From: Carpediemonas membranifera BICM
Taxonomy: Eukaryota; Protista; Fornicata
Direction: 5' to 3'
Length of the DNA stretch: 64,000 bases
Assembly (NCBI GenBank): GCA_019828565.1
Contig: JAHDYR010000041.1
Location: 101,616 to 165,615, forward strand
In this document: positions 2,280 through 58,488 of the stretch, piece after piece
Numbering within the stretch: the first letter of the stretch is position 1
How the letters are laid out: each line of letters opens with the position of its first letter
Translations under genes and position numbers: made by a program
The notes under the pieces: model-generated
Database searches by the model: none
What the model was told of the DNA's origin: nothing
Seen by the model: the letters and a program-made list of their open reading frames with translations, nothing else

Positions 2280-3653
2280 ATGCAATCGGTTTTCGACTTC
2301 TACATGCTCTTGAAGCGTTCGAAAACGTTTGGTAAGCAGTTCTTTATCTTCTATGACAGCGCTGAGATCAGTCAGGCCTCATCAAACGCGCAGGAGATGA
2401 TCAAGTGCTCACTTCTTCGTAAGTTCCTTCTGCCCGATGACAAGATCCTCACCGCCCTTCTTCGTGATCGTAAGTACTTTCCCCATACCTTTTTACACAG
2501 ATATTGGCTGGAAAACGCTTCGCAAGCTCTTCAGGTCGCCTCACCTTATCCTGCACCTAAGAGAAACTGCCGAGGCTCAGCTTGAGCTGATCACGACATC
2601 GGCTGAGCTGAAGAAGGTCATGGGAGATCATGCCTACGACAGCCTTGTCCAGAAGGTCCGCCGAGAAGTGTCTTCGGATCACGAGCACGACGTTGGAGGT
2701 AAGTACTCCAAATAACTCCTGCTTATTCAGTCCTTTCGCTGCTCCGTGAGCGCATAATGCGCAAGGTGAAGCCAGGAAGGTCGGGGGTCGTCCGTTCGTT
2801 CAAGAACAACGCCGAGCCTGAGTTGTCGGACCCGGTCGACGTGCAGTTCGACCGGATAAGGCACCTGGACGCGCTTCTGATGGACTCTCCCGTCCACAGA
2901 AGTACCCTGAGTGGCACATCGCGCCTCTTGCGCCGCCATCTTGCCGTGGAACACAACGGTGCGATCCGTGATTTGAAGAGGGAGCTTTGGCGAGCCCGGG
3001 CCAAGATTGAAAAGCTCGAGACGGAGAAGCTTGTGCCCTTGAAGAAGGAGGCTGAGGTCATAGACCTGGATCGGGAGGCTTTGGTGGCCGCAGACCCCAA
3101 AGATGACGTCCAGACCATCATGGAGAAGACCGCTAAGAAGTTTAAGAACGATACAAGCTCTCTGAAGCGGTCTGAGGTGCCTGGGGATGGCTCATGCATT
3201 CTCAGCGCCATGCATCTCATCAGGACTGGGTCCCAGCCTACTGTTGGTGAGAAGCTTCAGCTGTACGAGGACATCCGATCCTTCTGTGAGGGCAAGGGGT
3301 TCGAGGGCGACCCGTTCTCTGAGATGCCTGGCTCCCCTTTCCCCTGGGCAGACCATGAGGCCATCCAGGCCAGTGTAGAGCTGAGTCACACTCCGGTAAT
3401 CATCACCCAGATCGACGAGGACCTTACCTGCCTCTGGGTCCACAAAGGTTGGGAAGATTCAGAGTTCTTGCCCATCCAGGATGCGACGCTGGACAAGATC
3501 TTAGGTCTTTGTGAGAGCATGAAGCTCACTCAGTTCATCGTCATCGAGAATCGTCATGCCTGTGTCTACAGTCTTCCGGACCGCAAGCGCAAGGCAGCTG
3601 CCGCAGAGCCCGAGAAGCGTGCTACTCGTCCGGAGGATGTCACCCGCTCATAA
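2280..3653 (+). CDS. OTU-like cysteine protease (deubiquitinase) with coiled-coil N-terminus; introns 2470-2500 and 2699-2730
   Basis: VPGDGSCILSA (OTU DGxC) and ENRHACVY (His). Removing the two GTAAGT...AG introns joins three ORFs in frame. Confidence 0.75.
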
Positions 3654-3726
3654 ATGATTGATTGAATTGATATCTCTTCAAGTTTATTCACTCTTGCCTT
3701 GAGTCATGCGCGCAGTGTGGAAGCGC

Positions 3727-4688
3727 TTACGGGCGGGGTTGGACTTGGTCTTCCGCTTGCGGGGCTGCGGCTTGACCTGCAGTATTTTTGAACTGCTCCA
3801 CCTTTCGAGCGAGGTAGTGAGGGTCATCTATGGCGAGACTCTTGAAGCGAGCAATCGGGTGCTCCTCTTCATCGGCCTCAAAGTAGGTCTCGCCATAATC
3901 GATGCGCAAGAACTCGCCGCGAACGATGTTGGCAGTGGCCCTGACCGATATCACTGGCAGGCCATCCACCAAGACGTCCACGAACTCACAGTTGACATCG
4001 TCAGGGCTGTGGTTAATCAGGTGGACACCCGCTGCGGCCGACATGGCATCGACGGCGACCTGACTGTCAGCGAATGACATGCTGTGTAATGGTAATGGAA
4101 TATGCGAAACAAACACCATCTGGCCGTTGTTGCTGGCCGTCTCAGCATCGGGAATCAGCTTCCCGAGGTATATGCCGAGACATGTGCCAGCTGAGATATC
4201 CTCAGTGGCAATCATGCCTCGGCCGACGCTCTGCGTCCGATTGAGGGCCGGATGGTCGGGCTCCTGGGTCAGACGGGGGTCGCAACGGGTCTCGGATGAG
4301 ATCCAGGCCGGAGCAGGAATGGCCTGAAGGCTTATCTCATCCGAAATCAGCCGCTTGACGTCCTGCAGGTCTGAACCCGGGTAACATGCGTCCACCTAGG
4401 GTGGACGTGCATGACGGACCCCTCGACGGAGTCCTCCTCGGCTTCAGACGAGCTGGATGAATGGGAAGGCGACTCGGGAGGCGGAGGAGGAGGAGAATCT
4501 TGCTCCTTACCATCCCTCGGGCGACTCGGGAGGCGGAGGAGGAGGTGATGCTGCCGTTACAGTCGTTTCCGCAGGACGTTGATCCTGCGGAGAAGCAGAT
4601 GACTCAAAAAGTCTTGTTGGGTGGATTTTTGAGTCCTTCTCTTACCTACCGGTTGCTGCTTCCTTGCGGGCATCTTTCTTCTCGCCAT
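3727..4688 (-). CDS. SET-domain lysine methyltransferase
   Basis: GRGMIATEDI..G..LGIYLG, HLINHS, EFLRIDYGETYF; probable in-frame 33-nt intron GTTTGT...ACACAG at the same position as in the B copy. Confidence 0.85.
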
Positions 4689-4882
4689 ATCTTCGTTCTC
4701 TTTTTTTCTCGCAACTCCCGATCCGAAGAACAGGCGCATCGCTGATCAGATCCGAACAATACTGCAGTAGCATGCATAAATAGTGTAGCAATGAAGGTAT
4801 ACCTCTTTACTTGGATCAAAAAGCTTGTCCTTTGCTTCAAATCAAAATGTGCCATTCATGAAAAAAAAATGGCACATTGCAA

Positions 4883-5888
4883 ATGGACGAGAAATACGGA
4901 GAATTCGGCACGCGACGCATCAGTAAGGACCAAGAAGTCTTTGAATGTGTCTGTGGTAAGGTTCAGCTCAGGCGTGGACATCGCGGGATCGGTTTCAAGT
5001 CTTCTTCCTCTCACGAGTGTCCTTTTACAACAGAGAAGTTGATTAACCGACGGGTGCTAATCACCATCGAGCCGCTGCATGGTTTCGAGACCCCGACTCA
5101 GCCCTACCCCCGTCTTCCGCGTGGAAAGTCTTGCCAACTCATCTGGCTATCATTTCAAGCTCAAGACGGCTCTAGAGCTCGTTGATGATGAGTGGCTGAC
5201 TGCCGTTGCCCGCACCTTTAAGTCTACGTCCCATCTGGCCGAGGTACTTGAGGAGTTGGCGTCGCAGTACTCTAACTTCGACACTTACTGGGTGATATCG
5301 GGTCATTCTGATACAGAAACGTCGCGTATGATCATTGATACGTCTACGAACGAGTTTCTGTATCACCATGATCTGGTCCAGCTCATCCTCAGGTCATTCG
5401 AGAGCCCTTCCTTGGTGAGATCGACGCGTGTGCGTCTGATTTACTTTGCCACCTGCTCCGGACTCGACAGATCTGAGGAGTCTCAGCTGTGCAGTGCTAT
5501 TTCGACAGCCAAGTACAAGAACACATGCATTATCCTCACTCCTGAGAAGGTTCTGGCGCATGAGCTTGTTCTCCAGGACGCCTATTGGCTCTACCGCGTG
5601 ACATGCCTCGACAATCCTCTTTTCTTTCTGACGAAGTACTTCTCTGGCTATCGTTTCGCGCCTGGCTCAGCAGGAAGACGGATTATAGCCAATGGTTCCT
5701 TGTCATTTCCCAACGAGGCCAGGGTCATCATGTCTGAGACTAGCTATGCCCGGCCCATTCCTCTTCCTGAAATGCAAGACATCGTTTCTGATGTCAACGA
5801 GTATGACCCGTTAAGAACCGACCAGAGAAGACTTATGAATGATCGATACATAAGCATGATGACCCGTGCGCTTGAGAGAGACGTGTAG
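4883..5888 (+). CDS. Caspase/CHAT-like His-Cys protease with small N-terminal Cys/His motif (one frameshift near 5110)
   Basis: WVISGHS ... LIYFATCSG resembles the clan CD His-Cys dyad; N-terminal ECVCG...HECPF; homolog of 10733-11758. Confidence 0.6.
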
Positions 5889-7618: not shown

Positions 7619-8966
7619 GCATCCCGTCCAATTCCTGATGCACCGAATGGACTCGCGAATCCGTATAGACACAGAGGGCCGTGACCATACGCTATCCCTA
7701 GGCCGCCGCAGGGCTCTACTAGAGCAACTACGGGCGGCGGGATGCCCACGGCTCTCCACCATCGATGAGATTGACAACGGACCCGTTGCGTCAGCCCACC
7801 AAACATCAGGAACGCAAATCGAGAGGGAGGAGATGATGATCGCGGAGCTTATACCCCCGATAAGTCCACCTCTCGGCTCAGGACCACCCACCCCCGCCCA
7901 GTCACAGGAGACAGGCATCGTGCCTAGACCTAACGACAGCGAGGAGACCAGTCGGCCCACGAATGTCCAGCCTAGACATAACGGGGCACCCGCTCCCATG
8001 CCTGGCGGCCAAAGCGTGGCTGACACCAACCATCGGGGGATGGACGTACCAACGGTCCGAGTGAACCAGGCTATCGCAGCCTTCGCTCGTGACCTACGGG
8101 ACGCCATCCACCCGGACCTGCGGGAAGAGCTCTGGCGTGATGCCGACACAGTCCGCCAGACGCTTCTCTCGCCCCCCGCGCTCGAGCGAGCCATGGGGAC
8201 GGAGCGCAGGAGGCACCTCACGAAGGCGCAAGCCATCGAGATTGAGACGTGTCTCCTGCGTGCCGCAGGCGGCCTAACCCTGCCCCCCACTTCTCGCGCC
8301 GGTTCCCGTCGAACGGGATTGTGGCCAAACATGGCTCACGCCGTGTTGCGGCCGCAGCGCACATCGCTCTGGGGCTGCCGCTCCCTGCTATATTGGCGCA
8401 CCCTGCAACACAGGCCACCAACAATAGGCAGACCCGAGCGCCTACAAGACCTCTTGGGTTCCTTCCAGACCCCGCCGACGTGGCTCGCATCGGCCGCAGC
8501 CGACCGACGCGGAGGGGAACCAAGGGTTATGTCCGTGCCCTCATCGGAAAGGTCACCGCCTGCGCGGCAGCCAGAGATGAGGACAAGCGCGATCGTCTCA
8601 TCGACGTGATGCTGCACCCACAAACAGCACTTCGCCCCCGGAGGACCCGCCATAATCAGGTGGGAAGCACGTCGAGAAGCCGACTCGCCTACCAGCACGC
8701 CAGACGAGGGTACTACAGCAAGTCCATGAGTGCCCTGGTCTCGGAAGAACTGCAGATGACCCCAGCCGAAGCAGAGGAGAAGATGGTTCGGATGCAAGCT
8801 GACCCCTTCCAAGGCAGTCTTGATGACCTCCCAATCCGCCATCCCCTCGCCCCGCTCACCTCGGTAGAGTTCGAAACTCGGGACATCATCGATGTCCTGA
8901 GCAGTCTTCCGGCCGACTCGGCTCCCGGTCCGTCGGGCATGAGCTTCCTCCACTTGAAGCTCGCCG
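7619..8966 (+). mobile_element. CRE-clade non-LTR retrotransposon copy 1, 5' ORF fragment between elements A and B
   Basis: Near-identical to 48182-49530; ends in SAPGPSGMSFLHLK (RT domain 0-1); continues at 45553. Confidence 0.9.
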
Positions 8967-23045: not shown

Positions 23046-23213
23046 GATGAACTTGAGGCAGTGGTGGAGGAGGAACTCGCGGTCCGTGTGGGGCAGGGTC
23101 TCGCCGACGATGAAGGCCATGGAAGAGGCGGCCTGGGTCATCGAAGGGACCTTGACGGGGTCAGCCCAGTTGTAGTAGAGGTGGGAGGCGTTGTACGCGA
23201 ATGAGGCGACGTC
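23046..23213 (-). pseudogene. Captured PIWI-clade Argonaute C-terminal fragment
   Basis: Translates DVASFAYNASHLYYNWADPVKVPSMTQAASSMAFIVGETLPHTDREFLLHHCLKFI; cf. Piwi [33 protein letters not shown]...LYYL. Confidence 0.85.
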
Positions 23214-24399
23214 ACCACTCCCTACAACGGCGCCAGGATGTGGTCAAGGGGGAATTTGCACTGAGTCACGTCGAACTGGTTGCGGGCGACGTTGTTATCG
23301 TGACGGTGAAAGAGTGAGGGGATCGGTCTGCCCCCGCCGCTCTCTCCATGGCACTCTCCCCCGTGCGCCACCCCTGATCACTACGTCTGGACCACTATTC
23401 TTCCACGGCGTTCTCTCCCTGGCGTTCTCATAGGCAATCTTCTTCTTGCCTTCCTGATGTTGATATTAATTGTTTCTGTGTACACAAGCTTGCTAATGTC
23501 ATTATAAGCTTCACGTAGTACTAAATCGTCTTGTATTCCCGGTATTATCGTCCATATGGCTGAGCATGAATAATGATGTTGATTACAAAGGAGGGAGAAG
23601 CTGGTAGTGGCTCTAGAGCAGACAACGTTCAATGTGCAGCACGCATAGAACAACAGTCCCCTGAATATTACTGTAACTGATCATTCCACGGATTTCGTTT
23701 GCGACAGCGATCGCAAAATTGTGCACTTTACGGCTGACAACAGAGAATCGTCTGCATGCACGAAAACGTCGCGTATTCACTTGCTGCTATGCATGCAACG
23801 ACTGGCCGTGAAGAGATGGAGGCTGTCGTTGACAATGTGCTCGGTTTATAAACGCTCCTTGTTGTACGCGAATGAGGCGACGTCACCACTCCCTACAACG
23901 GCGCCAGGATGTGGTCAAGGGGGAATTTGCACTGAGTCACGTCGAACTGGTTGCGGGCGACGTTGTTATCGTGACGGTGAAAGAGTGAGGGGATCGGTCT
24001 GCCCCCGCCGCTCTCTCCATGGCACTCTCCCCCGTGCGCCACCCCTGATCACTACGTCTGGACCACTATTCTTCCACGGCGTTCTCTCCCTGGCGTTCTC
24101 ATAGGCAATCTTCTTCTTGCCTTCCTGATGTTGATATTAATTGTTTCTGTGTACACAAGCTTGCTAATGTCATTATAAGCTTCACGTAGTACTAAATCGT
24201 CTTGTATTCCCGGTATTATCGTCCATATGGCTGAGCATGAATAATGATGTTGATTACAAAGGAGGGAGAAGCTGGTAGTGGCTCTAGAGCAGACAACGTT
24301 CAATGTGCAGCACGCATAGAACAACAATCCCCTGAATATTACTGTAACTGATCATTCCACGGATTTCGTTTGCGACAGCGATCGCAAAATTGTGCACTT
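23190..24399 (+). repeat. Tandem copies of the 671-bp SET-chromo spacer unit
   Basis: Period 671 (23381 vs 24052); other copies near 27720-28400, 29907-30510, 31893-32295 and inverted at 37506-39557. Confidence 0.9.
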
Positions 24400-24463
24400 T
24401 ATGGCACGTCGAGAGACGGCAGAAACATACCCTACAGCTCAGGTTGGCTCAACTGTTAATGTG

Positions 24464-24528
24464 CTCGTGGTCCGTGTGGGACACAGGGTCTTGCAGACCA
24501 TAAAGTCCAGGGATGATGCGGGCTGTGG
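24464..24528 (-). pseudogene. Diverged second copy of part of the PIWI C-terminal fragment
   Basis: ctcgtggtccgtgtggg..cagggtcttgcagaccataaagtccagggatgatgcgggctg aligns with 23075-23136 with ~11 substitutions and a 2-nt insertion. Confidence 0.65.
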
Positions 24529-24549
24529 GTTCAGTTTTATTCATTCCGT

Positions 24550-25908
24550 CTACAGCATATTCAGCAATGTAAGCTTGTCCTTCTGTTGCACACGTATCTC
24601 ACCACACCGCTTACACTCAGTGAACACTCCACCAGGACCAGGGAGGCGACTCGGTATGTGTATCTCCGTCGCGCAACAGGTGCTGCAATACCAGTGTCTG
24701 CATGCGTCACAGAAGGCTGCATTCGCGACGTCTTGAGGCGGCTCCTCGACATTGGCTGACAGTGTAGTGGCACAGCCCCAGCATCGCCAGACACCGTCAT
24801 TGTCATAACGGCGATCGCAGTCTGAACAGACAAAGTTGATGTGGTCGAAGGTGGATCGCTTATGGTAAGGACACACGCAACTTATGTGAAAGCATGTCTT
24901 ACAGATGGTACACTGCGCAAAAGCTTCGTCCGAATCAGCATCTGCCCAGTCCAACGAATGACACACACCGCAACCGTGAATGATGGCAATGTCTCTCGCC
25001 ACGATAGGGTCGGCACGAGCAATCTCCTTGGCTGCCTGAATTTGGGCTATCTTGTCCGCAACAGCAGCATTGACAATCTCGCGAACCTCAGTCGTCTCGA
25101 AATGTATGGCGGCACCCGATACAGTTCGTTTGGGCGTTGCGCGTCTGTACGTTGTGCTTCCCGGCGACATGGCATCTTCCGGAGCGTCGCTCTGGGAAGC
25201 GATCTTACTCGAGTCATCTGGCAGCTCCTCTAACTTCTCTCGCTTGACCGGTAGGTCTGACTGGCTCACAGAGGAGCGTGGATCGGTGAACATCTCTGTC
25301 TTCGGGGCAGCTGCGGATAATGCAACAGGCTGGACGTCAGCCGCACGGATTATGCTTGTCGACCGATGGGCAGGCACGTTCACGTCGAACCGCACTGCAA
25401 CTCCTTTGTCCTCCATCACCCATGAAGAGACGAGGTCATAGATGGCGTTCATGGCTGAAGTCCGGGCGCTATAGCGGACGAAAACGCCGGAAACATCATT
25501 GTCACCATTAAATCTGCTTGAAATGGCGACTTTGTATCTTACGCCCTTGTGTATGGTCTTGTCTAGGCCGAAGTCGATGAGTGCCTCCCTAAGTGCGCTA
25601 CCTGATACATAAGATTTTGCAAAACCTTCCTCGTCGCCACTGCTGTTCTTCCCTGGGAGGCGTTGCTTCAGCTGGAGTTGAACGATCTTTGGGTGACATT
25701 CAAACACCACTGACAGGTTCTGTAGGAAGTTGCCAAAGGAATTCCATATGGCTCGGAGTTTCGTCCCTTCCTGCTTCCCTGTGAGGAATTCCTCGTTCGC
25801 AACGTAGCAGAATGCGTTCAGATAGAGCCGAAGAAGCTTCTTTCGGCGCCCAGAAACCGTATTCTTCGTTCCCATCAGCAGCGCTTGATCGTCATAAAGT
25901 GCACGCAC
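24550..25908 (-). CDS. PHD-finger protein
   Basis: CGVC...QCTICKTCFHISC...FVCSDC plus CxxC..CDACRHWYCSTC..CKRC. Confidence 0.8.
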   Translation of the reverse strand: MRALYDDQALLMGTKNTVSGRRKKLLRLYLNAFCYVANEEFLTGKQEGTKLRAIWNSFGNFLQNLSVVFECHPKIVQLQLKQRLPGKNSSGDEEGFAKSYVSGSALREALIDFGLDKTIHKGVRYKVAISSRFNGDNDVSGVFVRYSARTSAMNAIYDLVSSWVMEDKGVAVRFDVNVPAHRSTSIIRAADVQPVALSAAAPKTEMFTDPRSSVSQSDLPVKREKLEELPDDSSKIASQSDAPEDAMSPGSTTYRRATPKRTVSGAAIHFETTEVREIVNAAVADKIAQIQAAKEIARADPIVARDIAIIHGCGVCHSLDWADADSDEAFAQCTICKTCFHISCVCPYHKRSTFDHINFVCSDCDRRYDNDGVWRCWGCATTLSANVEEPPQDVANAAFCDACRHWYCSTCCATEIHIPSRLPGPGGVFTECKRCGEIRVQQKDKLTLLNML

Positions 25909-27113: not shown

Positions 27114-27782
27114 ATGCGACTGACCACGAAGGAGACGTATACGATGCCAAGTGATGACTATTGTCGTCTCTACAGCAGCAAGATCTTTACTGAGTTCAGT
27201 ACCGATTGTTCTGCGTTTGGCTTTTCGAGATCGATGCTTGCTAACAAGTGTGACATCAACGTGGACGAGAACGGCTTCAGTACTGCAGTTTCCGTCACTC
27301 AAGAAGAGCAATACTCCCTTATGGGAACTTCCGTTGGCAATGGGGTCATGGTGATGTCCCCAATCGAGAAAGGCACCATCATCGGAGCGTACCGTGGTGA
27401 GATCGTCTCGACGCCGGGCCCCACAGCGGATTCGACCTATGTCATGTCCTTCTCGCAGAAGCTTGAGTATCACGTCGACTCCAGCGGTCTTCAGTATGGC
27501 TGTCACCTTATCAACGACGGCATGGGCTTCTACAACTGTGATGCCCACACGTATCTCGTCTCCGTCATGGTGGATGACAAAGCCGTGAAACTGCCAATCC
27601 TCGTCATTGCGGCTACAGCCGATATCAAGCCGATGGAGTTCCTCTCCATTGAATACGGCGATGACTACTGGCGCGGTAAGAAGCGTGTTACTCTCTTCCC
27701 CTTCTCCATGGGTCGTATGTGCTCTGCAACGACTAGCCGTGAAGAGATGGAGGCTGTCGTTGACAATGTGCTCGGTTTATAA
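27114..27782 (+). CDS. SET-domain protein (NDG variant)
   Basis: VGNGV...IEKGTIIGAYRGEI, CHLINDG, EFLSIEYGDDYW. Confidence 0.85.
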   Translation: MRLTTKETYTMPSDDYCRLYSSKIFTEFSTDCSAFGFSRSMLANKCDINVDENGFSTAVSVTQEEQYSLMGTSVGNGVMVMSPIEKGTIIGAYRGEIVSTPGPTADSTYVMSFSQKLEYHVDSSGLQYGCHLINDGMGFYNCDAHTYLVSVMVDDKAVKLPILVIAATADIKPMEFLSIEYGDDYWRGKKRVTLFPFSMGRMCSATTSREEMEAVVDNVLGL

Positions 27783-28357
27783 ACGCTCCTTGTTGTACGC
27801 GAATGAGGCGACGTCACCACTCCCTACAACGGCGCCAGGATGTGGTCAAGGGGGAATTTGCACTGAGTCACGTCGAACTGGTTGCGGGCGACGTTGTTAT
27901 CGTGACGGTGAAAGAGTGAGGGGATCGGTCTGCCCCCGCCGCTCTCTCCATGGCACTCTCCCCCGTGCGCCACCCCTGATCACTACGTCTGGACCACTAT
28001 TCTTCCACGGCGTTCTCTCCCTGGCGTTCTCATAGGCAATCTTCTTCTTGCCTTCCTGATGTTGATATTAATTGTTTCTGTGTACACAAGCTTGCTAATG
28101 TCATTATAAGCTTCACGTAGTACTAAATCGTCTTGTATTCCCGGTATTATCGTCCATATGGCTGAGCATGAATAATGATGTTGATTACAAAGGAGGGAGA
28201 AGCTGGTAGTGGCTCTAGAGCAGACAACGTTCAATGTGCAGCACGCATAGAACAACAATCCCCTGAATATTACTGTAACTGATCATTCCACGGATTTCGT
28301 TTGCGACAGCGATCGCAAAATTGTGCACTTTACGGCTGACAACAGAGAATCGTCTGC

Positions 28358-29146
28358 ATGTACGAAAAAGTCGCGTATTCACTTGCTGCTATGCATGCCA
28401 TGACAAGATATAAGATTGCACCTGAGGAGGTGAAGAATTCTCATCGCCAATGCGTCAAGGACGCTGTTCTCGAAGCCTGGCTCTCATCTTCGGCTGGTTT
28501 CAAGTGGGCAACAACTCTGATTGACGAATTGAACGCTGCATACAAAGGCTCAATCACATACAACCTCCAGAGCCTTCTCTTCAGCGTTTTCCCCGAGGAA
28601 ATGACGGACCCGCGTGCAACGAACGACATACTGCGTGTGCATAAGCTGCTTGGCCCAATCATAGGGCAGACCGTCTTCTTGGCCTCCATCTGCAAGACTG
28701 ATAGCATCTCCATCACGCGCGATCACTTCATGTCTGTGTCCTCACCCGTGCCTTTGTCATTGGATGATCGCAGAGCCGCATACGTGGCTCATACCTTCCC
28801 GAGTGTCTGGTCGACACTGGTCGAGGCCCTGATGATCGGCAGCATCGACCAGGCGATCTTTGCTGATATCTGCCTCGCCATTTTCGAGGCTCCCGATCCG
28901 CAGTTCGCCGACACGAAGAAATATGCGCAGCTGACTGATACCTGTCTCTCGTACGCAGTGGAGAGTGTTACTGACAGGGATACTGAGCATAACAGCTGTA
29001 AGGTGAAGTGGTTCGGTTACCCCATCCCGACCTCTGCTCCGCTGTCCGAGTACAAGCAGTTTACGAATGAGACTCATGTGTCGAAGCGTGGCAGAGGTGT
29101 AGACAGTGGTTTTGTTGGGAAGGGACGCAGACTGAACCAGAAATAA
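28358..29146 (+). CDS. Protein with C-terminal chromodomain-like motif
   Basis: YAVESVTDRD...CKVKWFGYP resembles chromo YxVExIxD...YLVKWxGY; homolog of 61124-61969. Confidence 0.7.
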   Translation: MYEKVAYSLAAMHAMTRYKIAPEEVKNSHRQCVKDAVLEAWLSSSAGFKWATTLIDELNAAYKGSITYNLQSLLFSVFPEEMTDPRATNDILRVHKLLGPIIGQTVFLASICKTDSISITRDHFMSVSSPVPLSLDDRRAAYVAHTFPSVWSTLVEALMIGSIDQAIFADICLAIFEAPDPQFADTKKYAQLTDTCLSYAVESVTDRDTEHNSCKVKWFGYPIPTSAPLSEYKQFTNETHVSKRGRGVDSGFVGKGRRLNQK

Positions 29147-29762
29147 ACCATTTTGGGTGTGATACCGGCTTTGCTTCGCTTTGGCCGCCAGCGCCATCGT
29201 GAGTCATGACCTCCTGGCGGATGGCAGTCTCGACGGGAGCTTGAATGCCTCGAGGTAGCCCCTGATCCCCAACCTAATGCGAAGACGTGCAACCCGGCGG
29301 TAGCCAGCCGGAGCTGAGCCGAAAGTCGCCATCTAGATGCCCCGACGGAGTGTACGGTGGTTCGTGAGGCGACTGTTCCCCTCATGCCGTCCATATAGGC
29401 ATCCGCGCTGGCGTATCCTGCTGAATCCTTCGCCCCAGAGCTCATATCGGTTTCTTCAGAACGAAATTCTAAAGAAATGTTCGCGGGTATGCCTGATCAT
29501 CGCGCGTCGAAAGACAGCAGGAACGTACCCTACAGCTCAGGTTGAAGTAGGCTTGGCTTTGGTTCAACTGATAAATGCGCCATTGCTCCGTTTATATCAT
29601 CCAATGTTAGGATGCCTTGCTATGATGATATACCGGTCACTACGCTTCTGGGCGACGGTGGAGGCTGATGGTATGGCAGCGCAGGGGCATGAAGCGGGTC
29701 AGAGGGGTGGGTAGTCAAGGGATACTGACCGATCTTGGAACTTGGATGATCGTTGAGAACCA

Positions 29763-29930
29763 GATGAACTTGAGGCAGTGGTGGAGGAGGAACTCGCGGT
29801 CCGTGTGGGGCAGGGTCTCGCCGACGATGAAGGCCATGGAAGAGGCGGCCTGGGTCATCGAAGGGACCTTGACGGGGTCAGCCCAGTTGTAGTAGAGGTG
29901 GGAGGCGTTGTACGCGAATGAGGCGACGTC
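29763..29930 (-). pseudogene. Duplicate of the captured PIWI C-terminal fragment
   Basis: Identical to 23046-23213. Confidence 0.85.
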
Positions 29931-30471
29931 ACCACTCCCTACAACGGCGCCAGGATGTGGTCAAGGGGGAATTTGCACTGAGTCACGTCGAACTGGTTGC
30001 GGGCGACGTTGTTATCGTGACGGTGAAAGAGTGAGGGGATCGGTCTGCCCCCGCCGCTCTCTCCATGGCACTCTCCCCGTGCGCCACCCCTGATCACTAC
30101 GTCTGGACCACTATTCTTCCACGGCGTTCTCTCCCTGGCGTTCTCATAGGCAATCTTCTTCTTGCCTTCCTGATGTTGATATTAATTGTTTCTGTGTACA
30201 CAAGCTTGCTAATGTCATTATAAGCTTCACGTAGTACTAAATCGTCTTGTATTCCCGGTATTATCGTCCATATGGCTGAGCATGAATAATGATGTTGATT
30301 ACAAAGGAGGGAGAAGCTGGTAGTGGCTCTAGAGCAGACAACGTTCAATGTGCAGCACGCATAGAACAACAATCCCCTGAATATTACTGTAACTGATCAT
30401 TCCACGGATTTCGTTTGCGACAGCGATCGCAAAATTGTGCACTTTACGGCTGACAACAGAGAATCGTCTGC

Positions 30472-31258
30472 ATGTACGAAAAAGTCGCGTATTCACTTGC
30501 TGCTATGCATGCCATGACAAGATATAAGATTGCACCTGAGGAGGTGAAGAATTCTCATCGCCAATGCGTCAAGGACGCTGTTCTCGAAGCCTGGCTCTCA
30601 TCTTCGGCTGGTTTCAAGTGGGCAACAACTCTGATTGACGAATTGAACGCTGCATACAAAGGCTCAATCACATACAACCTCCAGAGCCTTCTCTTCAGCG
30701 TTTTCCCCGAGGAAATGACGGACCCGCGTGCAACGAACGACATACTGCGTGTGCATAAGCTGCTTGGCCCAATCATAGGGCAGACCGTCTTCTTGGCCTC
30801 CATCTGCAAGACTGATAGCATCTCCATCACGCGCGATCACTTCATGTCTGTGTCCTCACCCGTGCCTTTGTCATTGGATGATCGCAGAGCCGCATACGTG
30901 GCTCATACCTTCCCGAGTGTCTGGTCGACACTGGTCGAGGCCCTGATGATCGGCAGCATCGACCAGGCGATCTTTGCTGATATCTGCCTCGCCATTTTCG
31001 AGGCTCCCGATCCGCAGTTCGCCGACACGAAGAAATATGCGCAGCTGACTGATACCTGTCTCGTACGCAGTGGAGAGTGTTACTGACAGGGATACTGAGC
31101 ATAACAGCTGTAAGGTGAAGTGGTTCGGTTACCCCATCCCGACCTCTGCTCCGCTGTCCGAGTACAAGCAGTTTACGAATGAGACTCATGTGTCGAAGCG
31201 TGGCAGAGGTGTAGACAGTGGTTTTGTTGGGAAGGGACGCAGACTGAACCAGAAATAA
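30472..31258 (+). pseudogene. Duplicate chromodomain gene with 2-nt deletion near 31060
   Basis: Copy of 28358-29146; may be an assembly indel. Confidence 0.65.
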
Positions 31259-32469
31259 ACCATTTTGGGTGTGATACCGGCTTTGCTTCGCTTTGGCCGC
31301 CAGCGCCATCGTGAGTCATGACCTCCTGGCGGATGGCAGTCTCGACGGGAGCTTGAATGCCTCGAGGTAGCCCTGATCCCCAACCTAATGCGAAGACGTG
31401 CAACCCGGCGGTAGCCAGCCGGAGCTGAGCCGAAAGTCGCCATCTAGATGCCCCGACGGAGTGTACGGTGGTTCGTGAGGCGACTGTTCCCCTCATGCCG
31501 TCCATATAGGCATCCGCGCTGGCGTATCCTGCTGAATCCTTCGCCCCAGAGCTCATATCGGTTTCTTCAGAACGAAATTCTAAAGAAATGTTCGCGGGTA
31601 TGCCTGATCATCGCGCGTCGAAAGACAGCAGGAACGTACCCTACAGCTCAGGTTGAAGTAGGCTTGGCTTTGGTTCAACTGATAAATGCGCCATTGCTCC
31701 GTTTATATCATCCAATGTTAGGATGCCTTGCTATGATGATATACCGGTCACTACGCTTCTGGGCGACGGTGGAGGCTGATGGTATGGCAGCGCAGGGGCA
31801 TGAAGCGGGTCAGAGGGGTGGGTAGTCAAGGGATACTGACCGATCTTGGAACTTGGATGATCGTTGAGAACCAGATGAACTTGAGGCAGTGGTCCCCGCC
31901 GCTCTCTCCATGGCACTCTCCCCCGTGCGCCACCCCTGATCACTACGTCTGGACCACTATTCTTCCACGGCGTTCTCTCCCTGGCGTTCTCATAGGCAAT
32001 CTTCTTCTTGCCTTCCTGATGTTGATATTAATTGTTTCTGTGTACACAAGCTTGCTAATGTCATTATAAGCTTCACGTAGTACTAAATCGTCTTGTATTC
32101 CCGGTATTATCGTCCATATGGCTGAGCATGAATAATGATGTTGATTACAAAGGAGGGAGAAGCTGGTAGTGGCTCTAGAGCAGACAACGTTCAATGTGCA
32201 GCACGCATAGAACAACAATCCCCTGAATATTACTGTAACTGATCATTCCACGGATTTCGTTTGCGACAGCGATCGCAAAATTGTGCACTTTACGGCCGAC
32301 TGCCTGGGAAGGTATCGACTCGAAAGGATAGGGGCGTCTCTGTCTACCTCACAGATGAATAAATGAATGTATATATGCCTGTCTGGGCATCAGCGCTGTC
32401 GTTCAGGCCAATCTCGCTCGCAACCGAGCTTGAAGCAACGTCGACTCCTTTTGTCAATTTACTCATTAC

Positions 32470-36932: not shown

Positions 36933-37159
36933 ATGAACGAAGTAAATAGGTCGTGGGAATGACTCAAACACTGACTAAGCCATCGAATTGGCGCAGCTGA
37001 CCCCATATTGTTGTTAAATGACCACAAAGCATTCGCTTATGCACAATTAGCTGCCAGAAAGAACACTACCGTTACTTTGGATCATTCCAGTTCGCCGGAG
37101 ATGACGCAGGTCCAGAACGCTGCCTTGGAGGGCTGGTGAAGCGGTAGTGTAGCGCTTAC

Positions 37160-37345
37160 TCACCAAGCGGGCGATGGTCTCGACGGGACGGTTGACGGTC
37201 TCAAGGTGGCCCTGCTCTTCGACGTACCAGGCGGACATGCCGATGACGGAGCGGCGCTGACCCTGGCGGACGTTATCCTCGCCCTGGGTGAAGCTGTTCT
37301 TGCCGAAGTACACGTGGATACCGATGGTGAGGCAGGGCTGTAGCA
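37160..37345 (-). pseudogene. Probable captured fragment of the start of a PIWI domain
   Basis: PCLTIGIHVYF...QRRSVIGMSAW; cf. Piwi MIVGIDVYH...RRSIAGFVAS. Confidence 0.6.
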
Positions 37346-37387
37346 TGGAGGCCGAGAAACCATAAACTGCACGGATCCACAAACGTG

Positions 37388-39557
37388 GATTGGCCTGAAC
37401 GACAGCGCTGATGCCCAGACAGGCATATATACATTCATTTATTCATCTGTGAGGTAGACAGAGACGCCCCTATCCTTTCGAGTCGATACCTTCCCAGGCA
37501 GTCGGCCGTAAAGTGCACAATTTTGCGATCGCTGTCGCAAACGAAATCCGTGGAATGATCAGTTACAGTAATATTCAGGGGATTGTTGTTCTATGCGTGC
37601 TGCACATTTAACGTTGTCTGCTCTAGAGCCACTACCAGCTTCTCCCTCCTTTGTAATCAACATCATTATTCATGCTCAGCCATATGGACGATAATACCGG
37701 GAATACAAGACGATTTAGTACTACGTGAAGCTTATAATGACATTAGCAAGCTTGTGTACACAGAAACAATTAATATCAACATCAGGAAGGCAAGAAGAAG
37801 ATTGCCTATGAGAACGCCAGGGAGAGAACGCCGTGGAAGAATAGTGGTCCAGACGTAGTGATCAGGGGTGGCGCACGGGGGAGAGTGCCATGGAGAGAGC
37901 GGCGGGGGCAGACCGATCCCCTCACTCTTTCACCGTCACGATAACAACGTCGCCCGCAACCAGTTCGACGTGACTCAGTGCAAATTCCCCCTTGACCACA
38001 TCCTGGCGCCGTTGTAGGGAGTGGTGACGTCGCCTCATTCGCGTACAACAAGGAGCGTTTATAAACCGAGCACATTGTCAACGACATCCTCCATCTCTTC
38101 ACGGCCAGTCGTTGCATGCATAGCAGCAAGTGAATACGCGACGTTTTCGTGCATGCAGACGATTCTCTGTTGTCAGCCGTAAAGTGCACAATTTTGCGAT
38201 CGCTGTCGCAAACGAAATCCGTGGAATGATCAGTTACAGTAATATTCAGGGGATTGTTGTTCTATGCGTGCTGCACATTGAACGTTGTCTGCTCTAGAGC
38301 CACTACCAGCTTCTCCCTCCTTTGTAATCAACATCATTATTCATGCTCAGCCATATGGACGATAATACCGGGAATACAAGACGATTTAGTACTACGTGAA
38401 GCTTATAATGACATTAGCAAGCTTGTGTACACAGAAACAATTAATATCAACATCAGGAAGGCAAGAAGAAGATTGCCTATGAGAACGCCAGGGAGAGAAC
38501 GCCGTGGAAGAATAGTGGTCCAGACGTAGTGATCAGGGGTGGCGCACGGGGGAGAGTGCCATGGAGAGAGCGGCGGGGGCAGACCGATCCCCTCACTCTT
38601 TCACCGTCACGATAACAACGTCGCCCGCAACCAGTTCGACGTGACTCAGTGCAAATTCCCCCTTGACCACATCCTGGCGCCGTTGTAGGGAGTGGTGACG
38701 TCGCCTCATTCGCGTACAACAAGGAGCGTTTATAAACCGAGCACATTGTCAACGACAGCCTCCATCTCTTCACGGCCAGTCGTTGCATGCATAGCAGCAA
38801 GTGAATACGCGACGTTTTCGTGCATGCAGACGATTCTCTGTTGTCAGCCGTAAAGTGCACAATTTTGCGATCGCTGTCGCAAACGAAATCCGTGGAATGA
38901 TCAGTTACAGTAATATTCAGGGGATTGTTGTTCTATGCGTGCTGCACATTGAACGTTGTCTGCTCTAGAGCCACTACCAGCTTCTCCCTCCTTTGTAATC
39001 AACATCATTATTCATGCTCAGCCATATGGACGATAATACCGGGAATACAAGACGATTTAGTACTACGTGAAGCTTATAATGACATTAGCAAGCTTGTGTA
39101 CACAGAAACAATTAATATCAACATCAGGAAGGCAAGAAGAAGATTGCCTATGAGAACGCCAGGGAGAGAACGCCGTGGAAGAATAGTGGTCCACACGTAG
39201 TGATCAGGGGTGGCGCACGGGGAGAGTGCCATGGAGAGAGCGGCGGGGGCAGACCGATCCCCTCACTCTTTCACCGTCACGATAACAACGTCGCCCGCAA
39301 CCAGTTCGACGTGACTCAGTGCAAATTCCCCCTTGACCACATCCTGGCGCCGTTGTAGGGAGTGGTGACGTCGCCTCATTCGCGTACAACAAGGAGCGTT
39401 TATAAACCGAGCACATTGTCAACGACAGCCTCCATCTCTTCACGGCCAGTCGTTGCATGCATAGCAGCAAGTGAATACGCGACGTTTTCGTGCATGCAGA
39501 CGATTCTCTGTTGTCAGCCGTAAAGTGCACAATTTTGCGATCGCTGTCGCAAACGAA
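37388..39557 (-). repeat. Three tandem 671-bp units in inverted orientation
   Basis: ORF echoes at 37583, 38254, 38925; 37388-37910 is the inverse of 31893-32412. Confidence 0.9.
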
Positions 39558-41153
39558 ATGAGCAGCGCTAGTTCATATGAGTACACCAAGGACCTATTTA
39601 TAGCGTCTTTCCGGCTCTGTTTCCATAGAACACTGACAATCCCCGGGGATATACCCTCAATCCTCAAACTCGCCTTTTTCAACCACTTCGACGAAGAAAT
39701 GCCCTCGAGTGTGGCTTTTGAGATCCCCAACAGAGCAAGTGTTGATGTTGTCCAAATTAGCTTTGCAGAGCGCCAAATGATGGAAGCCATACTGTCAATG
39801 ATTCCCCCTCTCAAACCATCCGCGCAAGCCCTCCTCGACTGCGCCCGCTCCATCCTCACAGACGGCCCCCCGCTTTCCATGAACATCCCATTGGCTCCAG
39901 GTCAGGAGCTCCCCGTTGCCCTTCACACGCTCAACCAGGGCACGTTGTGGGCGTGTCTGATGGGTGCTGGGGCCAACCCAGACCTCGAGGACATGGTTCT
40001 GAGGCGGTGTCAGAGCCAAGGCCCAGGCGAAATCGAGATGCACAGCAAGATCCGCCGCATTTTCACTCCAGACGACAAGTGCCTCTGGTTCCTCTGCCGC
40101 AAGTTCCACTTCTCGCTGAACGTCGCCGAGAAGGACGGTGAGAGCTTTCAGTGCAATGCGTACGATAGATGCTACCACCACCGCATGTACATGGGCCGAC
40201 TCTTCATGCTCGACACTGAGCACCACGCCGCCCTCACCAGGGCCAGAATGCCCAGGGCCCTCAAGGTTTTCAGCGATGATTCCACCCAGATCGCCAAGAC
40301 GCCCAAGGGCCTGTGGGCCTGGGGCAAATGCCATCGGAATGACAAATCCAGGTTCTCTGCCCCGTTCCGCCTCACCTTCCCCGAATGCCCCAGAGTATCC
40401 CACCTCGAGGCCAGCCTGCCCCCCTGGGAGAAGCACAGGATGGTGGTCGATGTATCACTATGGGCAATAGAGGCCTTTATACTCACCCCTGTCGGCACTA
40501 TCGAATCAAGAGGGCCTGGGAACGTCTTCAAAGAGGTCGCTTTGCCGACAGGATTTGTTCCTGATCACATCCTACATGGATTTAAGACAACTATCCTCTC
40601 CATGGGCGATCGTCAAATGATAAGCGGTTGGAACGGCTGTGGACGGTTGGGTCTTGGGCACAAGAAGAAGCTTTCTGGCTTCATTGACCTTCCCCATCCG
40701 GTGGAACAGATCATATTTTGCGATTATAACAACTTTAGCATCTTCGAGAGTGACAACCGATTGCTATTTGCTGGCAGAGTTCCTGAATACCTTGAATCGT
40801 TTGTTGATTTGTATGAGGGCGAGAAATGCGTCACACCAACCCATATAGAGCTGCCATATCTGCGGACGAAAGGATTCTTCGCCGGGGAGGCGTGGGTCAT
40901 CTGGGTCACTGAAGGCAAGAGTTATGTCTCGTGCAATTTTGGTGGCTTAGACAAGTTTTATGTCCCCTTTGAGGCCAGATATGCTTCCATAGATGGCGAT
41001 CTAGTCGAGAAACCTGCTGATGGCTGCAAATTCTGCAATTCAGCCGGTCAATGGCTCGAAGTAGTGCGCGTGGCTTCCTTCGTGGCCGAGATGCGTGAGT
41101 GTGAGTCGCCCAGAGGTGTTGAAGTTGACACGATCGATAATGTAAAGACGTAA
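39558..41153 (+). CDS. Divergent RCC1-like beta-propeller protein
   Basis: KGLWAWG, GWNGCGRLGLG; homolog of 56786-58319. Confidence 0.6.
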   Translation: MSSASSYEYTKDLFIASFRLCFHRTLTIPGDIPSILKLAFFNHFDEEMPSSVAFEIPNRASVDVVQISFAERQMMEAILSMIPPLKPSAQALLDCARSILTDGPPLSMNIPLAPGQELPVALHTLNQGTLWACLMGAGANPDLEDMVLRRCQSQGPGEIEMHSKIRRIFTPDDKCLWFLCRKFHFSLNVAEKDGESFQCNAYDRCYHHRMYMGRLFMLDTEHHAALTRARMPRALKVFSDDSTQIAKTPKGLWAWGKCHRNDKSRFSAPFRLTFPECPRVSHLEASLPPWEKHRMVVDVSLWAIEAFILTPVGTIESRGPGNVFKEVALPTGFVPDHILHGFKTTILSMGDRQMISGWNGCGRLGLGHKKKLSGFIDLPHPVEQIIFCDYNNFSIFESDNRLLFAGRVPEYLESFVDLYEGEKCVTPTHIELPYLRTKGFFAGEAWVIWVTEGKSYVSCNFGGLDKFYVPFEARYASIDGDLVEKPADGCKFCNSAGQWLEVVRVASFVAEMRECESPRGVEVDTIDNVKT

Positions 41154-41167
41154 AGCTAAGTATTTCT

Positions 41168-43909
41168 GTGATGACGAATTCTCTGATAACGTGGGTTCTC
41201 GGGAATCTTGTCGTCTCATTCCCGCCTGATACGACCGGTGACCACATATGTTGCGCCATATACTCGCATCTCTTCTCCTCTCGTCTCCCAGGCTTCAATA
41301 AGAGAAAGATACACGAAGAAAACGTATTCCAGCACGCCATCCGGGAATTGGGCAGCATGAGGAACGATATAAGCCAATGTTTCACCAGCAACGTGAAGAA
41401 CGATTGGAAGCGTGCAGTCCAAAGGATGACTTCTTCCAACCTTGTCACAGTTCATCCAGTCAACGACGAAGTTGAACGTTTGCGTGCCCGCGTTCAGGAG
41501 CTAGAGAAGCAATTGCGTGACACGACCTGCTTGCTGGACATGATGAGCTCGCTGAACGCCATTCTGTCCGGCAAGAACAACGACACGGCATTCCACTCGA
41601 TGTTCAACAGCTTTGCGAGTCGGCTGGGACTAGACACGATAGGAAGGACTCAGAAGCGCCGGGAGCCGATTGCCGGGCTGGACATGAGCATACTCAATAT
41701 CCCAGGCCTTCGCGAGGCACTGTCGGAGGAGGAGGTGGCCGATCTGTCTTGCTTCATTCCCGTGGAGTATGCCATCCAAGAGGCTGGCGTCACAGTCACA
41801 GCTGACAGCTCCAGGCTGACTGTCCCTATCGGTCAGACCGTCAATTTCATTGGTTCGCAGGAGCTCATTGACGCAACCGTGGAACGTCTGCAGCTCACCC
41901 CGACTGACGCTGTCCGCTTTGGCCAGACAACCAAGCTACTATATGCAGACGCGATAGATGCGAAACAGGCACGTGATACTGTCCGGGCCGACAGGATTCA
42001 TAGACGGCAGGGACTTCGCTCTACAATTATTTCCCCCAACCCCTGGGATTTTGTTAGTTCGGTTTTCTTTGACTGTGAGGCCATATGCACCTCGGTCCTT
42101 CTTCGTCCGATGGCATTTGTTGCCGATAAGCCTGCTCGGAAGACATGTCTGGAGGTATGCGCAAAGGACGACGAAGTTGAGGCTGGCAGGGTCTTCAACC
42201 TTGAGTTGTGCCTGTGGGTTGACGGCTGGAAGCATGGAACTACTGCAGTTAAGTTCAGGCTTGGTGACAAGGAGGGCATTGCCATTCCTGGGAAGTTGAC
42301 CCGGGTCTTCACACTCTTGGAGTTCATCGGCCACGAGGACCAAATTCCATCTTTGTACCCCCGTATTGCTGCGGAGATCAGTAACTTGGTTAACCTCCAC
42401 TTCTGTGTCCGGCAGACTGGCGCTATTGCCCAAATTTGCCGCGTCCATACCCTGGCCGACAACAAGGCTCTCCAAGTTCTGCTCGGAACCATGCGCGGCG
42501 GCAAGAACAGGTGTGTGTTTTCTGTTCTCAGTGATTCAGAGTTCATTTCCAACCCGTATGGATTCAGTACCATACGCGATCGTATCGCCGCTGCCAACCC
42601 ACAGTACAAGGTCATCTCTGTGCAGTTATCCGACCTACTCCTCCGCCGACAGATGTACTACGCGGCACAAAAGCAAGAGATTGATCATCTGAGCAGTACA
42701 CTGGGCCCAGGCAGACGAGTGAGGATCAAAGAGAAGGATCGGATCACCTTGGATCTTCAACACCGGTACGGTAAGTACAAGTGGGATGAGAATCAGTTCA
42801 TCCCTCTGTTCCAGGACAGCCCTGCTCTTGCCGAGTTGACAACAGTCGCCCCGCCGCTGATGCACACCAGCCATGAGCTCCTTGAGCAAGTCGCGTGTCT
42901 GGTTAAGATGTTTCCACAACCACCACGCAACCCAGAACTCTCTTTCTGGCGTCAGCAGAGCGGCAATACTGAGTTCGTCAGAACAGTTGGCTGCAACGAG
43001 CAAGAGAGAGCTCGTGCAAGACTGGCAGTCCTGGCTACCTCACATATCACGTGTGTGCCAGAGTGTGTGAGAGAGCTTTTCCGTGTCATCGCTCACCTCC
43101 AGCATCTTTACTACTCGATGGAGGACCCGACCCCTGAGCTGATCCGCTGGCATTGGGTCGCCGCCGCAGTCATACACGCGTTCCACACCGCAATGAGCAT
43201 CTGCCCTGATGGCTCATACCGCACCAAGACCAAGAGTGCGGAAATGAAGAAGCCTTGTGTCATAACCCTTAAGATGCACGCTGCCGTTGCAGTCATTCCG
43301 TTGATCCATCAGGAGACTATGCTCCCTCTGACGTTCATGCTGGAGGAACATTTTGAGCGATCATTCCTGCCCAACATGGAGATGAAGCAACGCGCTCAGA
43401 GAGCTCGAATTCTGCATCTCGTCAGTCTGATGTCCCAGGCGAAGTACATCAAGCGTGCGTTGCTGAGGACTGAGTCCGCTGGCAGGAGACAGCACAGCAT
43501 TCCGGCGCTGGGAACACTTGTTGCCATGCATGTACATGAGTGCGTGAAGAGTGCCCAGATGTGGAAGAAGGTGCGCGGAATGAGTGTGGATCCATTGGAG
43601 AACGCAGGTCTAGACCAGCTGAAACGTGATCTCACCACGTTCTGGCGAACATTCGACTCGAGAATGGCACAGGATGTGATGACATGCCAGGTAGTCTGGG
43701 ACGATGGTATGCTGCACTGCCAGTTACCAAAGCGCACGGAACCGCGTAATCCCGTGGAAATCACGGTATGTATATGCGAACATTTGGGAGCTGGTCACGA
43801 TTCGTCTGATGACGAGGCTTATCGCCCAGGGAAGTCGAGGAAGAGTGCCAAGAAACGGAAACAGCCTACTATTCCGTCATTTGGTGGGTTCCAGCCAGAC
43901 AATGAGTAA
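41168..43909 (+). CDS. Chapaev/Transib/RAG1-like DDE transposase of C (913 aa, intact)
   Basis: LWVDGW (D at 42221), TLADNKAL..LLG...RC (D at 42458), PPLMH, TLKMH...LPLTFMLEEHFE (E at ~43355); cf. Transib HKxLxH...LPIGxLSEEAxE. Confidence 0.8.
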   Translation: MMTNSLITWVLGNLVVSFPPDTTGDHICCAIYSHLFSSRLPGFNKRKIHEENVFQHAIRELGSMRNDISQCFTSNVKNDWKRAVQRMTSSNLVTVHPVNDEVERLRARVQELEKQLRDTTCLLDMMSSLNAILSGKNNDTAFHSMFNSFASRLGLDTIGRTQKRREPIAGLDMSILNIPGLREALSEEEVADLSCFIPVEYAIQEAGVTVTADSSRLTVPIGQTVNFIGSQELIDATVERLQLTPTDAVRFGQTTKLLYADAIDAKQARDTVRADRIHRRQGLRSTIISPNPWDFVSSVFFDCEAICTSVLLRPMAFVADKPARKTCLEVCAKDDEVEAGRVFNLELCLWVDGWKHGTTAVKFRLGDKEGIAIPGKLTRVFTLLEFIGHEDQIPSLYPRIAAEISNLVNLHFCVRQTGAIAQICRVHTLADNKALQVLLGTMRGGKNRCVFSVLSDSEFISNPYGFSTIRDRIAAANPQYKVISVQLSDLLLRRQMYYAAQKQEIDHLSSTLGPGRRVRIKEKDRITLDLQHRYGKYKWDENQFIPLFQDSPALAELTTVAPPLMHTSHELLEQVACLVKMFPQPPRNPELSFWRQQSGNTEFVRTVGCNEQERARARLAVLATSHITCVPECVRELFRVIAHLQHLYYSMEDPTPELIRWHWVAAAVIHAFHTAMSICPDGSYRTKTKSAEMKKPCVITLKMHAAVAVIPLIHQETMLPLTFMLEEHFERSFLPNMEMKQRAQRARILHLVSLMSQAKYIKRALLRTESAGRRQHSIPALGTLVAMHVHECVKSAQMWKKVRGMSVDPLENAGLDQLKRDLTTFWRTFDSRMAQDVMTCQVVWDDGMLHCQLPKRTEPRNPVEITVCICEHLGAGHDSSDDEAYRPGKSRKSAKKRKQPTIPSFGGFQPDNE

Positions 43910-44339: not shown

Positions 44340-44942
44340 CCACTGATGGCGCGAATCTTGATGCACATTGGCTTCTTAGTGCCTGCGTGGATGTTTGATG
44401 TTGTTTTCGTTTCTTTTCGCGAGGTTCGAAGACTCTTTGTATTCATTTTCATCGTCTTTGGAAATAAATCGACTGAATCTTTCTCGAGTCATTCATTGAA
44501 TTGCTTGGAATAGGTTTAATTTAAATGGAAATGGATGTGCTAGTCCTCCTCTACGCCTGAATGCGGACACGGCGCATACTGTCTTTTTCGAAATATCCAA
44601 AGTGAGTGCAAATAAAAATAAATAAAGTTGTACCCTCAGGATACTTCTATAGTTAGGTACTACTCATGGGAGAAGTTTCCTCTCTTTCTGAACTTCCTAC
44701 AGAGCAGCAGCCTCAATTCTCGCAAAAACCAGTGAATCTTTTTAATATCTCGCGATTGTACGTTGGAATATTCCCATAGATCTAGCTCGTGTCCTTATTT
44801 GCCTTGAACTAACCTTTACTAGATCTATAGAAATATTCCTACGCTCAATCTTGAGATTGGAAGAAGATTTGGTCGAAAAATGGGCAAAAATGGGTACCAT
44901 ACCCACCTCTTGACCGAATTTTAATGAATTTTTTAAAGATAC

Positions 44943-45010
44943 TGGGTACCTTACCCATGGGTAAGGTACCCATTCGAGGTGGGTACCTCACCCCCCCCGG
45001 AGACAGTATG
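44943..45010 (-). repeat. Right TIR of C
   Basis: Reverse complement of 20571-20639, with the G-run one base shorter. Confidence 0.95.
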
Positions 45011-58389: not shown

Positions 58390-58488
58390 AGAAACGACGT
58401 CCTGGAGGACGTCCTGGTGTTGGGAGGGGGTGTTCTTGAGCACGTGATAGTGGACGGCCTTGTTGGTGGGCGCGGCCCATGAGAAGCA
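58390..58488 (-). pseudogene. Captured PIWI-domain fragment (HYHVL segment)
   Basis: CFSWAAPTNKAVHYHVLKNTPSQHQDVLQDVVS; cf. Ago PSHYHVL...DELQ; its end DVVS overlaps the DVAS start of 23046-23213. Confidence 0.7.

Follow-up and report, generated by a model that had tools for sequence, protein, structure and literature searches.

In the metamonad Carpediemonas membranifera, several families of large cut-and-paste DNA transposons with a predicted RAG1 fold carry captured pieces of a single host gene, piwiA, all taken from its PIWI domain and probably in repeated captures. The pieces are kept in intergenic cassettes, have been duplicated and have been swapped between families. The window in which they came to attention, i.e., the whole stretch of 64,000 nucleotides that was analysed (contig JAHDYR010000041.1, positions 101,616 to 165,615), had been described in a first-pass annotation as harbouring a transposon with a captured C-terminal PIWI fragment. 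The reading that we prefer, with a probability of about 0.55, is that the pieces benefit the elements by anti-silencing in trans: small RNAs made from the transposons would also target the mRNA of piwiA.

The fragment first noticed lies on the minus strand of 23046–23213. It does translate into the C terminus that had been read from it (DVASF...HLYYNW...LKFI), and the Pfam Piwi profile matches this translation, if weakly (E = 0.0012, profile positions 265–300 of 302). The host donor was found as well: piwiA, an intact, single-copy Piwi-clade gene on contig C7. The fragment, hereafter piece II, corresponds to the last 169 coding nucleotides, or the last 56 codons, of this gene. The alignment is ungapped, with 153 of 169 nucleotides identical, and ends at the stop codon of the donor; its score is 274, while 60 codon shuffles of piwiA reached 47 at most. 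To the paralog piwiB on contig C65, piece II is only 80% identical over 115 nt. The fragment is genuine, and its match is well beyond chance. Searching the own genome with the stretch yielded, apart from 7 full copies, two long reading frames, one with 823 and one with 796 codons, both of which are PIWI-domain genes annotated in C. membranifera.

The duplicate that had been reported at 29763–29930 is borne out, and a third copy of piece II is shortened to 21 nt. The stub of about 24 bp, said to persist in the 671-bp repeats, was found as a 24-nt sequence at 23861, 27792, 38026, 38697 and 39367; it has 3 mismatches to piwiA. An older piece, VI, is directly fused to piece II. Hairpins were looked for at the piwiA pieces and none was found. 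The peptide VARNQFDV (~23250–23290, within the 671-bp unit) was considered as an extra PIWI remnant and rejected: 327 of 500 shuffles reach its alignment score.

In total, the carrier element, E1, contains 15 piwiA-derived pieces of five segment types, amounting to 1,187 nt. A sixth type, piece V, resides in a neighbouring element just upstream of an RCC1-like gene (Table 1). The pieces measure 60–223 bp and are 77–91% identical to piwiA. Piece IIb lies inside an old, deleted internal duplicate (24401–24534) of the block upstream of the HEPN-like gene. Piece I rides in a cassette of about 640 bp, which is partly deleted in E1 (37015–37444).

Table 1. Pieces of piwiA, carrier transposon E1 and host small-RNA genes (positions refer to the window unless a contig is given; nt, nucleotides of the piwiA coding sequence; percentages after nt, identity to piwiA)
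Feature	Positions	Strand	Remarks
Piece II	23045–23213	-	nt 2302–2470, 90.5%, no indel; 7 full copies genome-wide
Piece VI	22941–23041	-	nt 1625–1722, 77%; core 22950–23020, 79%; after piece II, out of gene order
Piece II, second copy	29762–29930	-	
Piece VI, second copy	29658–29758	-	
Piece VI, third copy, with 21-nt remnant of piece II	31769–31893	-	remnant at 31873–31893
Piece IIb	24464–24525	-	nt 2380–2439, 77–80%; decayed sister of II
Piece VII	29186–29261	-	nt 1824–1900, 78%; 40 nt past the stop of gene 28358–29146
Piece VII, second copy	31298–31378	-	nt 1819–1900
Piece I	37167–37352	-	nt 1684–1869, 89.8%, no indel; at least 39 copies genome-wide
Piece V	58395–58486	-	nt 2217–2308, small deletions; in another nested element; 17 copies genome-wide
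Carrier transposon E1	20571–45010		24.4 kb, terminal inverted repeats, 2-bp target duplication
Left terminal inverted repeat	20571–20647	+	~77 bp, begins CATACTGT
Right terminal inverted repeat	44937–45010	-	96% identical to left repeat
Transposase	41168–43909	+	intact, 913 aa, DDE-like motifs, predicted RAG1/Transib fold
HEPN-like cargo gene	22165–22728	-	weak HEPN-like match; pieces II and VI 210–490 nt upstream, sense
PHD-like cargo gene	24550–25908	-	weak PHD-finger match
SET-domain cargo gene	27114–27782	+	3' end within 671-bp unit, then antisense piwiA stub
RCC1-like (propeller) cargo gene	39471–41153	+	multi-copy family; label from repeat motifs, not from an own Pfam match
671-bp unit, tandem copies	23190–24405		24-nt piwiA stub at 23861–23884
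671-bp unit, further copies	27725–28404, 29907–30518, 31894–32300		
671-bp unit, inverted copies	37501–39559		
piwiA	C7:87055–89523	-	823 aa, intron-free; Piwi domain E = 7e-38
piwiB	2731–5118 of the C65 stretch analysed	-	796-codon frame, PIWI domain
RdRP gene	C6:761656–764958		single gene in the genome

That the carrier is a transposon, as had been proposed, holds: the stretch sits between inverted repeats flanked by a target duplication, and near-identical copies occur elsewhere. The duplicated dinucleotide reads GG at this insertion, as confirmed by the matching empty site at about 50138; at the copy on C13 it reads CT. The copies of E1 on C13, C45 and C67 are mostly 98–100% identical; E1 is recently active. 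The 671-bp repeat is neither the element itself nor its terminus; it is an internal intergenic unit that has been duplicated within E1 in both orientations. Throughout the window, large transposons of this kind are nested: other CATACTGT ends lie at 7618, 8967, 45553, 49595 and 54110, and a second transposase of 902 aa (50512–53220) is 26% identical to the first. Beside ends of this type, open reading frames between 45608 and 47606 resemble, by eye, a reverse transcriptase of non-LTR retroelements and a restriction-like endonuclease. The HEPN-like cargo module (21689–22842) has more than 40 copies genome-wide, at about 97% identity and often in tandem. On C45 (9987–10883, plus strand), a frame of 299 codons resembles a geminivirus-type Rep with HUH motif; the Carpediemonas genome paper already lists four such genes (PMC8516963).

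The transposase of E1 matched no Pfam or PDB sequence profile, and Pfam was also blank for 18 members of its family. Sixteen distant relatives were found, which include further proteins of Carpediemonas as well as proteins encoded on contigs of GCA_002919055.1 and in a metagenome. An alignment-based model reached a pLDDT of 76.6 (35 for the model from the single sequence), and all 45 Foldseek matches of this model at E ≤ 0.001 were RAG1, Transib or RAGL proteins, the best being RAG1 (E = 3.7e-9). Identity in these structural matches is 10–14%, the TM-score below 0.4. Like Transib and RAG-like elements, E1 thus combines a predicted fold matching RAG1, HzTransib and BbRAGL with terminal inverted repeats. 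Unlike in Transib, however, its ends begin with CATACTGT instead of CAC, the target duplication comprises 2 bp (two insertions) instead of 5, and the 24-kb element carries SET, PHD-like and other cargo. CACTA/EnSpm (CMC) elements are characterized by a 2-bp target duplication, ends starting with CA, large size and a tendency to capture genes. E1 shares these traits, but lacks the CACTA/CACTG end motif and any Pfam match to CACTA transposase families. Because the combination of ends and target duplication does not fully agree with either Transib or CACTA, we leave E1 unclassified, as an element with a predicted RAG1 fold. The related transposases of GCA_002919055.1 and of the metagenome contig are accompanied by similar cargo (GNAT, RCC1 and kinase by Pfam, and SET-like by similarity to a gene of the window). 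In these elements, 58 kb in total, neither CATACTGT ends nor PIWI pieces were seen; pieces from a diverged donor would be hard to see.

The donor deserves some attention. The assignment of the fragment to the Piwi clade is corroborated by the ranking of the matches of piwiA beyond Carpediemonas: the best are Piwi, Aub and Ago3 proteins, with E-values as low as 5e-18, and plant Argonautes follow at 4e-8 or higher. The HLYYNW motif is common to piwiA and the Piwi rows of the alignment. An ortholog of piwiA was not found in the protein similarity search, and no Pfam PAZ domain was scored in piwiA or piwiB. In piwiA the catalytic positions read D574-E625-D660-S797, i.e., serine replaces the last catalytic histidine, while piwiB keeps the full DEDH tetrad; judged from these residues, piwiB is the more probable slicer of the two. 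Two Pfam models for RNase III found no match in the genome. The small-RNA pathway may be Dicer-independent, or Dicer may be very divergent. Two genes of the RCC1-like family (C7:80654–84828), 65–75% identical to the copies in the elements, lie 2–6 kb downstream of piwiA.

A signal of host escape was not detected in piwiA: preferred codons make up 0.81 of the captured and 0.79 of the uncaptured parts (P = 0.67). GC3 of the captured region is raised in piwiB (P = 0.005) and not in piwiA, which is only suggestive. The excess of changes at third codon positions of the pieces (33/176, against 17/354 at positions 1 and 2) fits ordinary post-capture drift under protein constraint.

Genome-wide, at least 75 piwiA pieces were counted on 25 contigs, a number that leaves out old pieces and stubs. 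They comprise eight segment types, all derived from the PIWI-domain part of piwiA (nt 1625–2471). The most abundant one, nt 1684–1869, has at least 39 copies (best 40 of 83 candidates scored); the genome-wide DNA search found 17 copies of nt 2217–2308, 7 each of nt 2302–2470 and of nt 2249–2471, the latter with an additional partial one, and 4 of nt 2129–2305. The first 1,640 nt of piwiA with its upstream DNA, in contrast, matched only themselves in the genome, as did the RdRP gene. A 9-kb stretch comprising piwiB, PFO and other genes returned PFO paralogs, cross-matches to piwiA pieces and one small repeat; captured pieces of its own were not found. This dispersed repeat of 140–200 bp, at positions 8347–8543 of the piwiB stretch, has at least 5 other copies at 92–98% identity. 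Of 21 matches to the tubulin family, 20 were full domains and one was a short piece. The latter (C2:438055–438198, minus strand) is isolated, covers 55 positions within a frame of 56 codons and could be a captured piece or an exon. A scan for host codon usage, covering the window and the element DNA sampled, picked up pieces I and II; whatever else it flagged was element genes, and no other host-like intergenic coding piece appeared.

Silencing genes are thus over-represented among captured genes, with at least 75 pieces of piwiA versus none in about 15 kb of control host coding DNA and a single tubulin piece. The captured pieces are non-random within the controls run, and the expectation of a random sample of host genes can be dismissed to this extent. 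The suspected enrichment of RNAi genes, in turn, stands for one PIWI paralog, piwiA, and falls for RNAi genes in general: neither RdRP nor piwiB has contributed a piece.

The pieces fall into two identity classes, a young one near 90% and an old one at 77–80%. At codon positions 1 and 2, 17 of 354 sites have diverged in the young and 29 of 157 in the old class (P = 2e-6), although the classes had themselves been defined by the identities under test. In stretches covered by pieces of both classes, 5 private changes are found in the young and 27 in the old ones (P = 1e-4). IIb sits in an old internal duplicate of the block of II, yet II has acquired 1 private change and IIb 9; piece II is therefore either conserved or renewed.

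The slots are not constant either. Upstream of the HEPN-like gene, E1 has II and VI, while the elements on C62 and C50 have III, joined to a flank that is about 90% identical. Upstream of the RCC1-like gene, related elements carry IV, V or the stub. Cassette I differs by less than 1% among 29 loci with many different flanks; six of its copies lie 529 nt behind a transposase that is only 25% identical to that of E1, and no terminal motif intervenes. Other element modules are also common to several families, at 97%. Because modules in general are swapped between families, the spread of the cassette is not special by itself and is not proof of selection.

How could the elements profit? Transcripts of the elements would run across the pieces, which often lie between convergent genes or within inverted repeats, and would give rise to small RNAs; alternatively, the host RdRP would copy element transcripts to this end. 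Small RNAs antisense to piwiA would guide an Argonaute, with piwiB as the candidate slicer, to the piwiA mRNA, and the level of the piwiA protein, the putative silencer of the elements, would be lowered. Host gene and pieces would drift apart with time, the old pieces matching poorly and being replaced by fresher ones. That the pieces are transcribed, yield small RNAs and repress piwiA is our inference. The layout is mixed. Cassette I has open reading frames on both sides at 11 of 29 loci, convergent in 7 of the 11, and at 17 of the 29 the downstream gene reads the piece antisense; pieces II, VI, III, IV and V each have the sense orientation relative to the gene that follows. About 60–67% of the 21-nt windows of pieces I and II have no more than 2 mismatches to piwiA, the longest perfect match being only 20 nt. 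In Drosophila, piRNAs on the host gene arise from pieces of about 90% identity and almost vanish at 79–82% (PMC13534243). By this yardstick, pieces I–III may still act, and VI, VII and IIb would have lost their effect.

The benefit might also be one in cis, the pieces acting as camouflage or hostage; a decoy or camouflage had been named as the alternative in the first-pass annotation. Copies carrying piwiA would be silenced less, either since strong silencing of these copies would cost a host lineage its own effector, or since the matching small RNAs are depleted; the gain would go to the carrier copy, not to all elements. Such a model has been proposed for gene capture in plants (10.1101/777037). 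It accounts for several families each having their own pieces without free-riding, an argument also made for Drosophila (PMC13534243), and is compatible with age classes and slot turnover. For camouflage, however, any essential host gene would do, yet within the limits of the controls only piwiA was found. The idea overlaps with action in trans and still requires small RNAs. Taking both routes together, we consider it unlikely, but worth keeping in mind.

Alternatively, an ancestral element could have captured the 3' third of piwiA once and by chance, with neutral fragmentation, duplication and module swapping to follow and no function at all. All pieces stem from one stretch of 850 nt, the stop codon marks the end of both II and IV, and the elements freely reshuffle modules. 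The alignments lend some plausibility to a single capture, in that some deviations from piwiA are common to III, IV and V and the ends of III and II abut (nt 2305 and 2302). A single event predicts, however, a like decay in all pieces. Divergence at positions 1 and 2 is instead 0.035–0.06 for I, II and III, 0.09 for IV and V, which also carry deletions, and 0.15–0.22 for VI, VII and IIb; this heterogeneity is significant (P = 3e-4). Moreover, overlapping pieces share few differences (II and IV have 3 in common and 10 and 15, respectively, of their own), and that PIWI should be the one gene captured among about 8,300 is a priori improbable. Against the two age classes and the slot turnover, a single neutral capture appears rather improbable.

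The pieces might also be regulatory filler, i.e., promoters, untranslated regions or terminators, or host-like, G+C-rich aids to expression, the choice of donor reflecting a capture bias of obscure cause. Their location 70–490 nt upstream of cargo genes or just past stop codons would suit such a role, as would the reuse of cassettes before or behind many different genes. There is, however, no reason why six parts of one coding sequence should all be regulatory, and the highly expressed PFO and tubulins have not been captured likewise. We regard this explanation as quite improbable.

Feedback on silencing genes is familiar from plants, where miR168 acts on AGO1 and ROS1 serves as methylation sensor. 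A rheostat that couples the PIWI level to transposon activity and is maintained by host selection is nevertheless very hard to believe, since the pieces travel in mobile elements that have been amplified recently and the feedback would have the wrong sign, with silencing falling as element RNA rises.

Equally far-fetched are two more readings, co-capture of the piwiA 3' end with the RCC1-like gene 2.2 kb downstream on the same strand and translation of the pieces into short dominant-negative peptides. IV, V and the stub do precede RCC1-like cargo genes, but those on C7 are overall just 65–75% identical to the element copies, and the DNA between piwiA and its neighbour was not found in the elements (best 40 of 84 candidates). 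As for peptides, I and II keep the reading frame and lack indels, and I lies within an ORF of 135 aa in some copies; the start of this ORF is, however, absent from other copies, no ATG precedes piece II, and III–VI are frameshifted, so that the pieces are not gene-like.

Anti-silencing in trans, the preferred reading, has its closest precedent in the telomeric retrotransposons of Drosophila. These non-LTR elements made at least 9 captures, eight of them from genes of the piRNA pathway; cases are TART-A with nxf2, piwi in D. auraria and D. triauraria, and aub in Zaprionus and D. sucinea (PMC13534243). The captured pieces of piwi or aub comprise 140–235 bp, have a median identity of about 90% (range 76–95%) and were amplified up to 8 times (PMC13534243). 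In Carpediemonas, too, pieces of similar size and identity come from several regions of one Piwi-clade effector, were amplified within the element and replaced one another in related lineages. The differences are just as evident. Carpediemonas is a metamonad protist without a known piRNA pathway and without an RNase III match, the carriers are cut-and-paste DNA transposons with terminal inverted repeats, and one cassette is common to deeply diverged families; any small RNAs are putative, and host escape was not seen. That deeply diverged RAG1-fold DNA transposons of a metamonad share PIWI-domain cassettes of one host Argonaute, renew them from time to time and so direct a small-RNA pathway, possibly one without Dicer, against its own effector, a strategy of fly telomeric retrotransposons that would have evolved independently, is a tentative view to which we would give slightly less than an even chance.

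Capture of host exons by DNA elements is also known from plants, where cross-talk may lead to silencing of the donor gene (10.1101/777037). Like Pack-MULE, Pack-CACTA and Helitron elements, those of Carpediemonas carry host coding fragments. But capture in plants is broad and unselective, with 1,629 donors in maize (10.1101/777037), whereas the pieces detected here derive from one silencing gene and their carrier encodes an intact transposase.

Capturing fragments of silencing genes as counter-defence is thus already known; in the literature found it is confined to the telomeric retrotransposons of Drosophila, on which the host depends. New are the other supergroup, the other class of transposons, the restriction to one paralog and one domain, and the sharing across families. 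Reports on transposons or Argonautes of Carpediemonas, or on the capture of an Argonaute by DNA transposons, were not found in a literature search of incomplete coverage. C. membranifera is in culture, the donor is a single-copy gene, and diagnostic mismatches tell element-derived from gene-derived reads. If the preferred reading is true, piwiA would be the Argonaute that silences transposons in a lineage about whose small RNAs very little is known and in which no Dicer was found. Met with again in a free-living metamonad, and there in ordinary DNA transposons, the pattern would then stand as a general solution in the arms race between transposons and their hosts.
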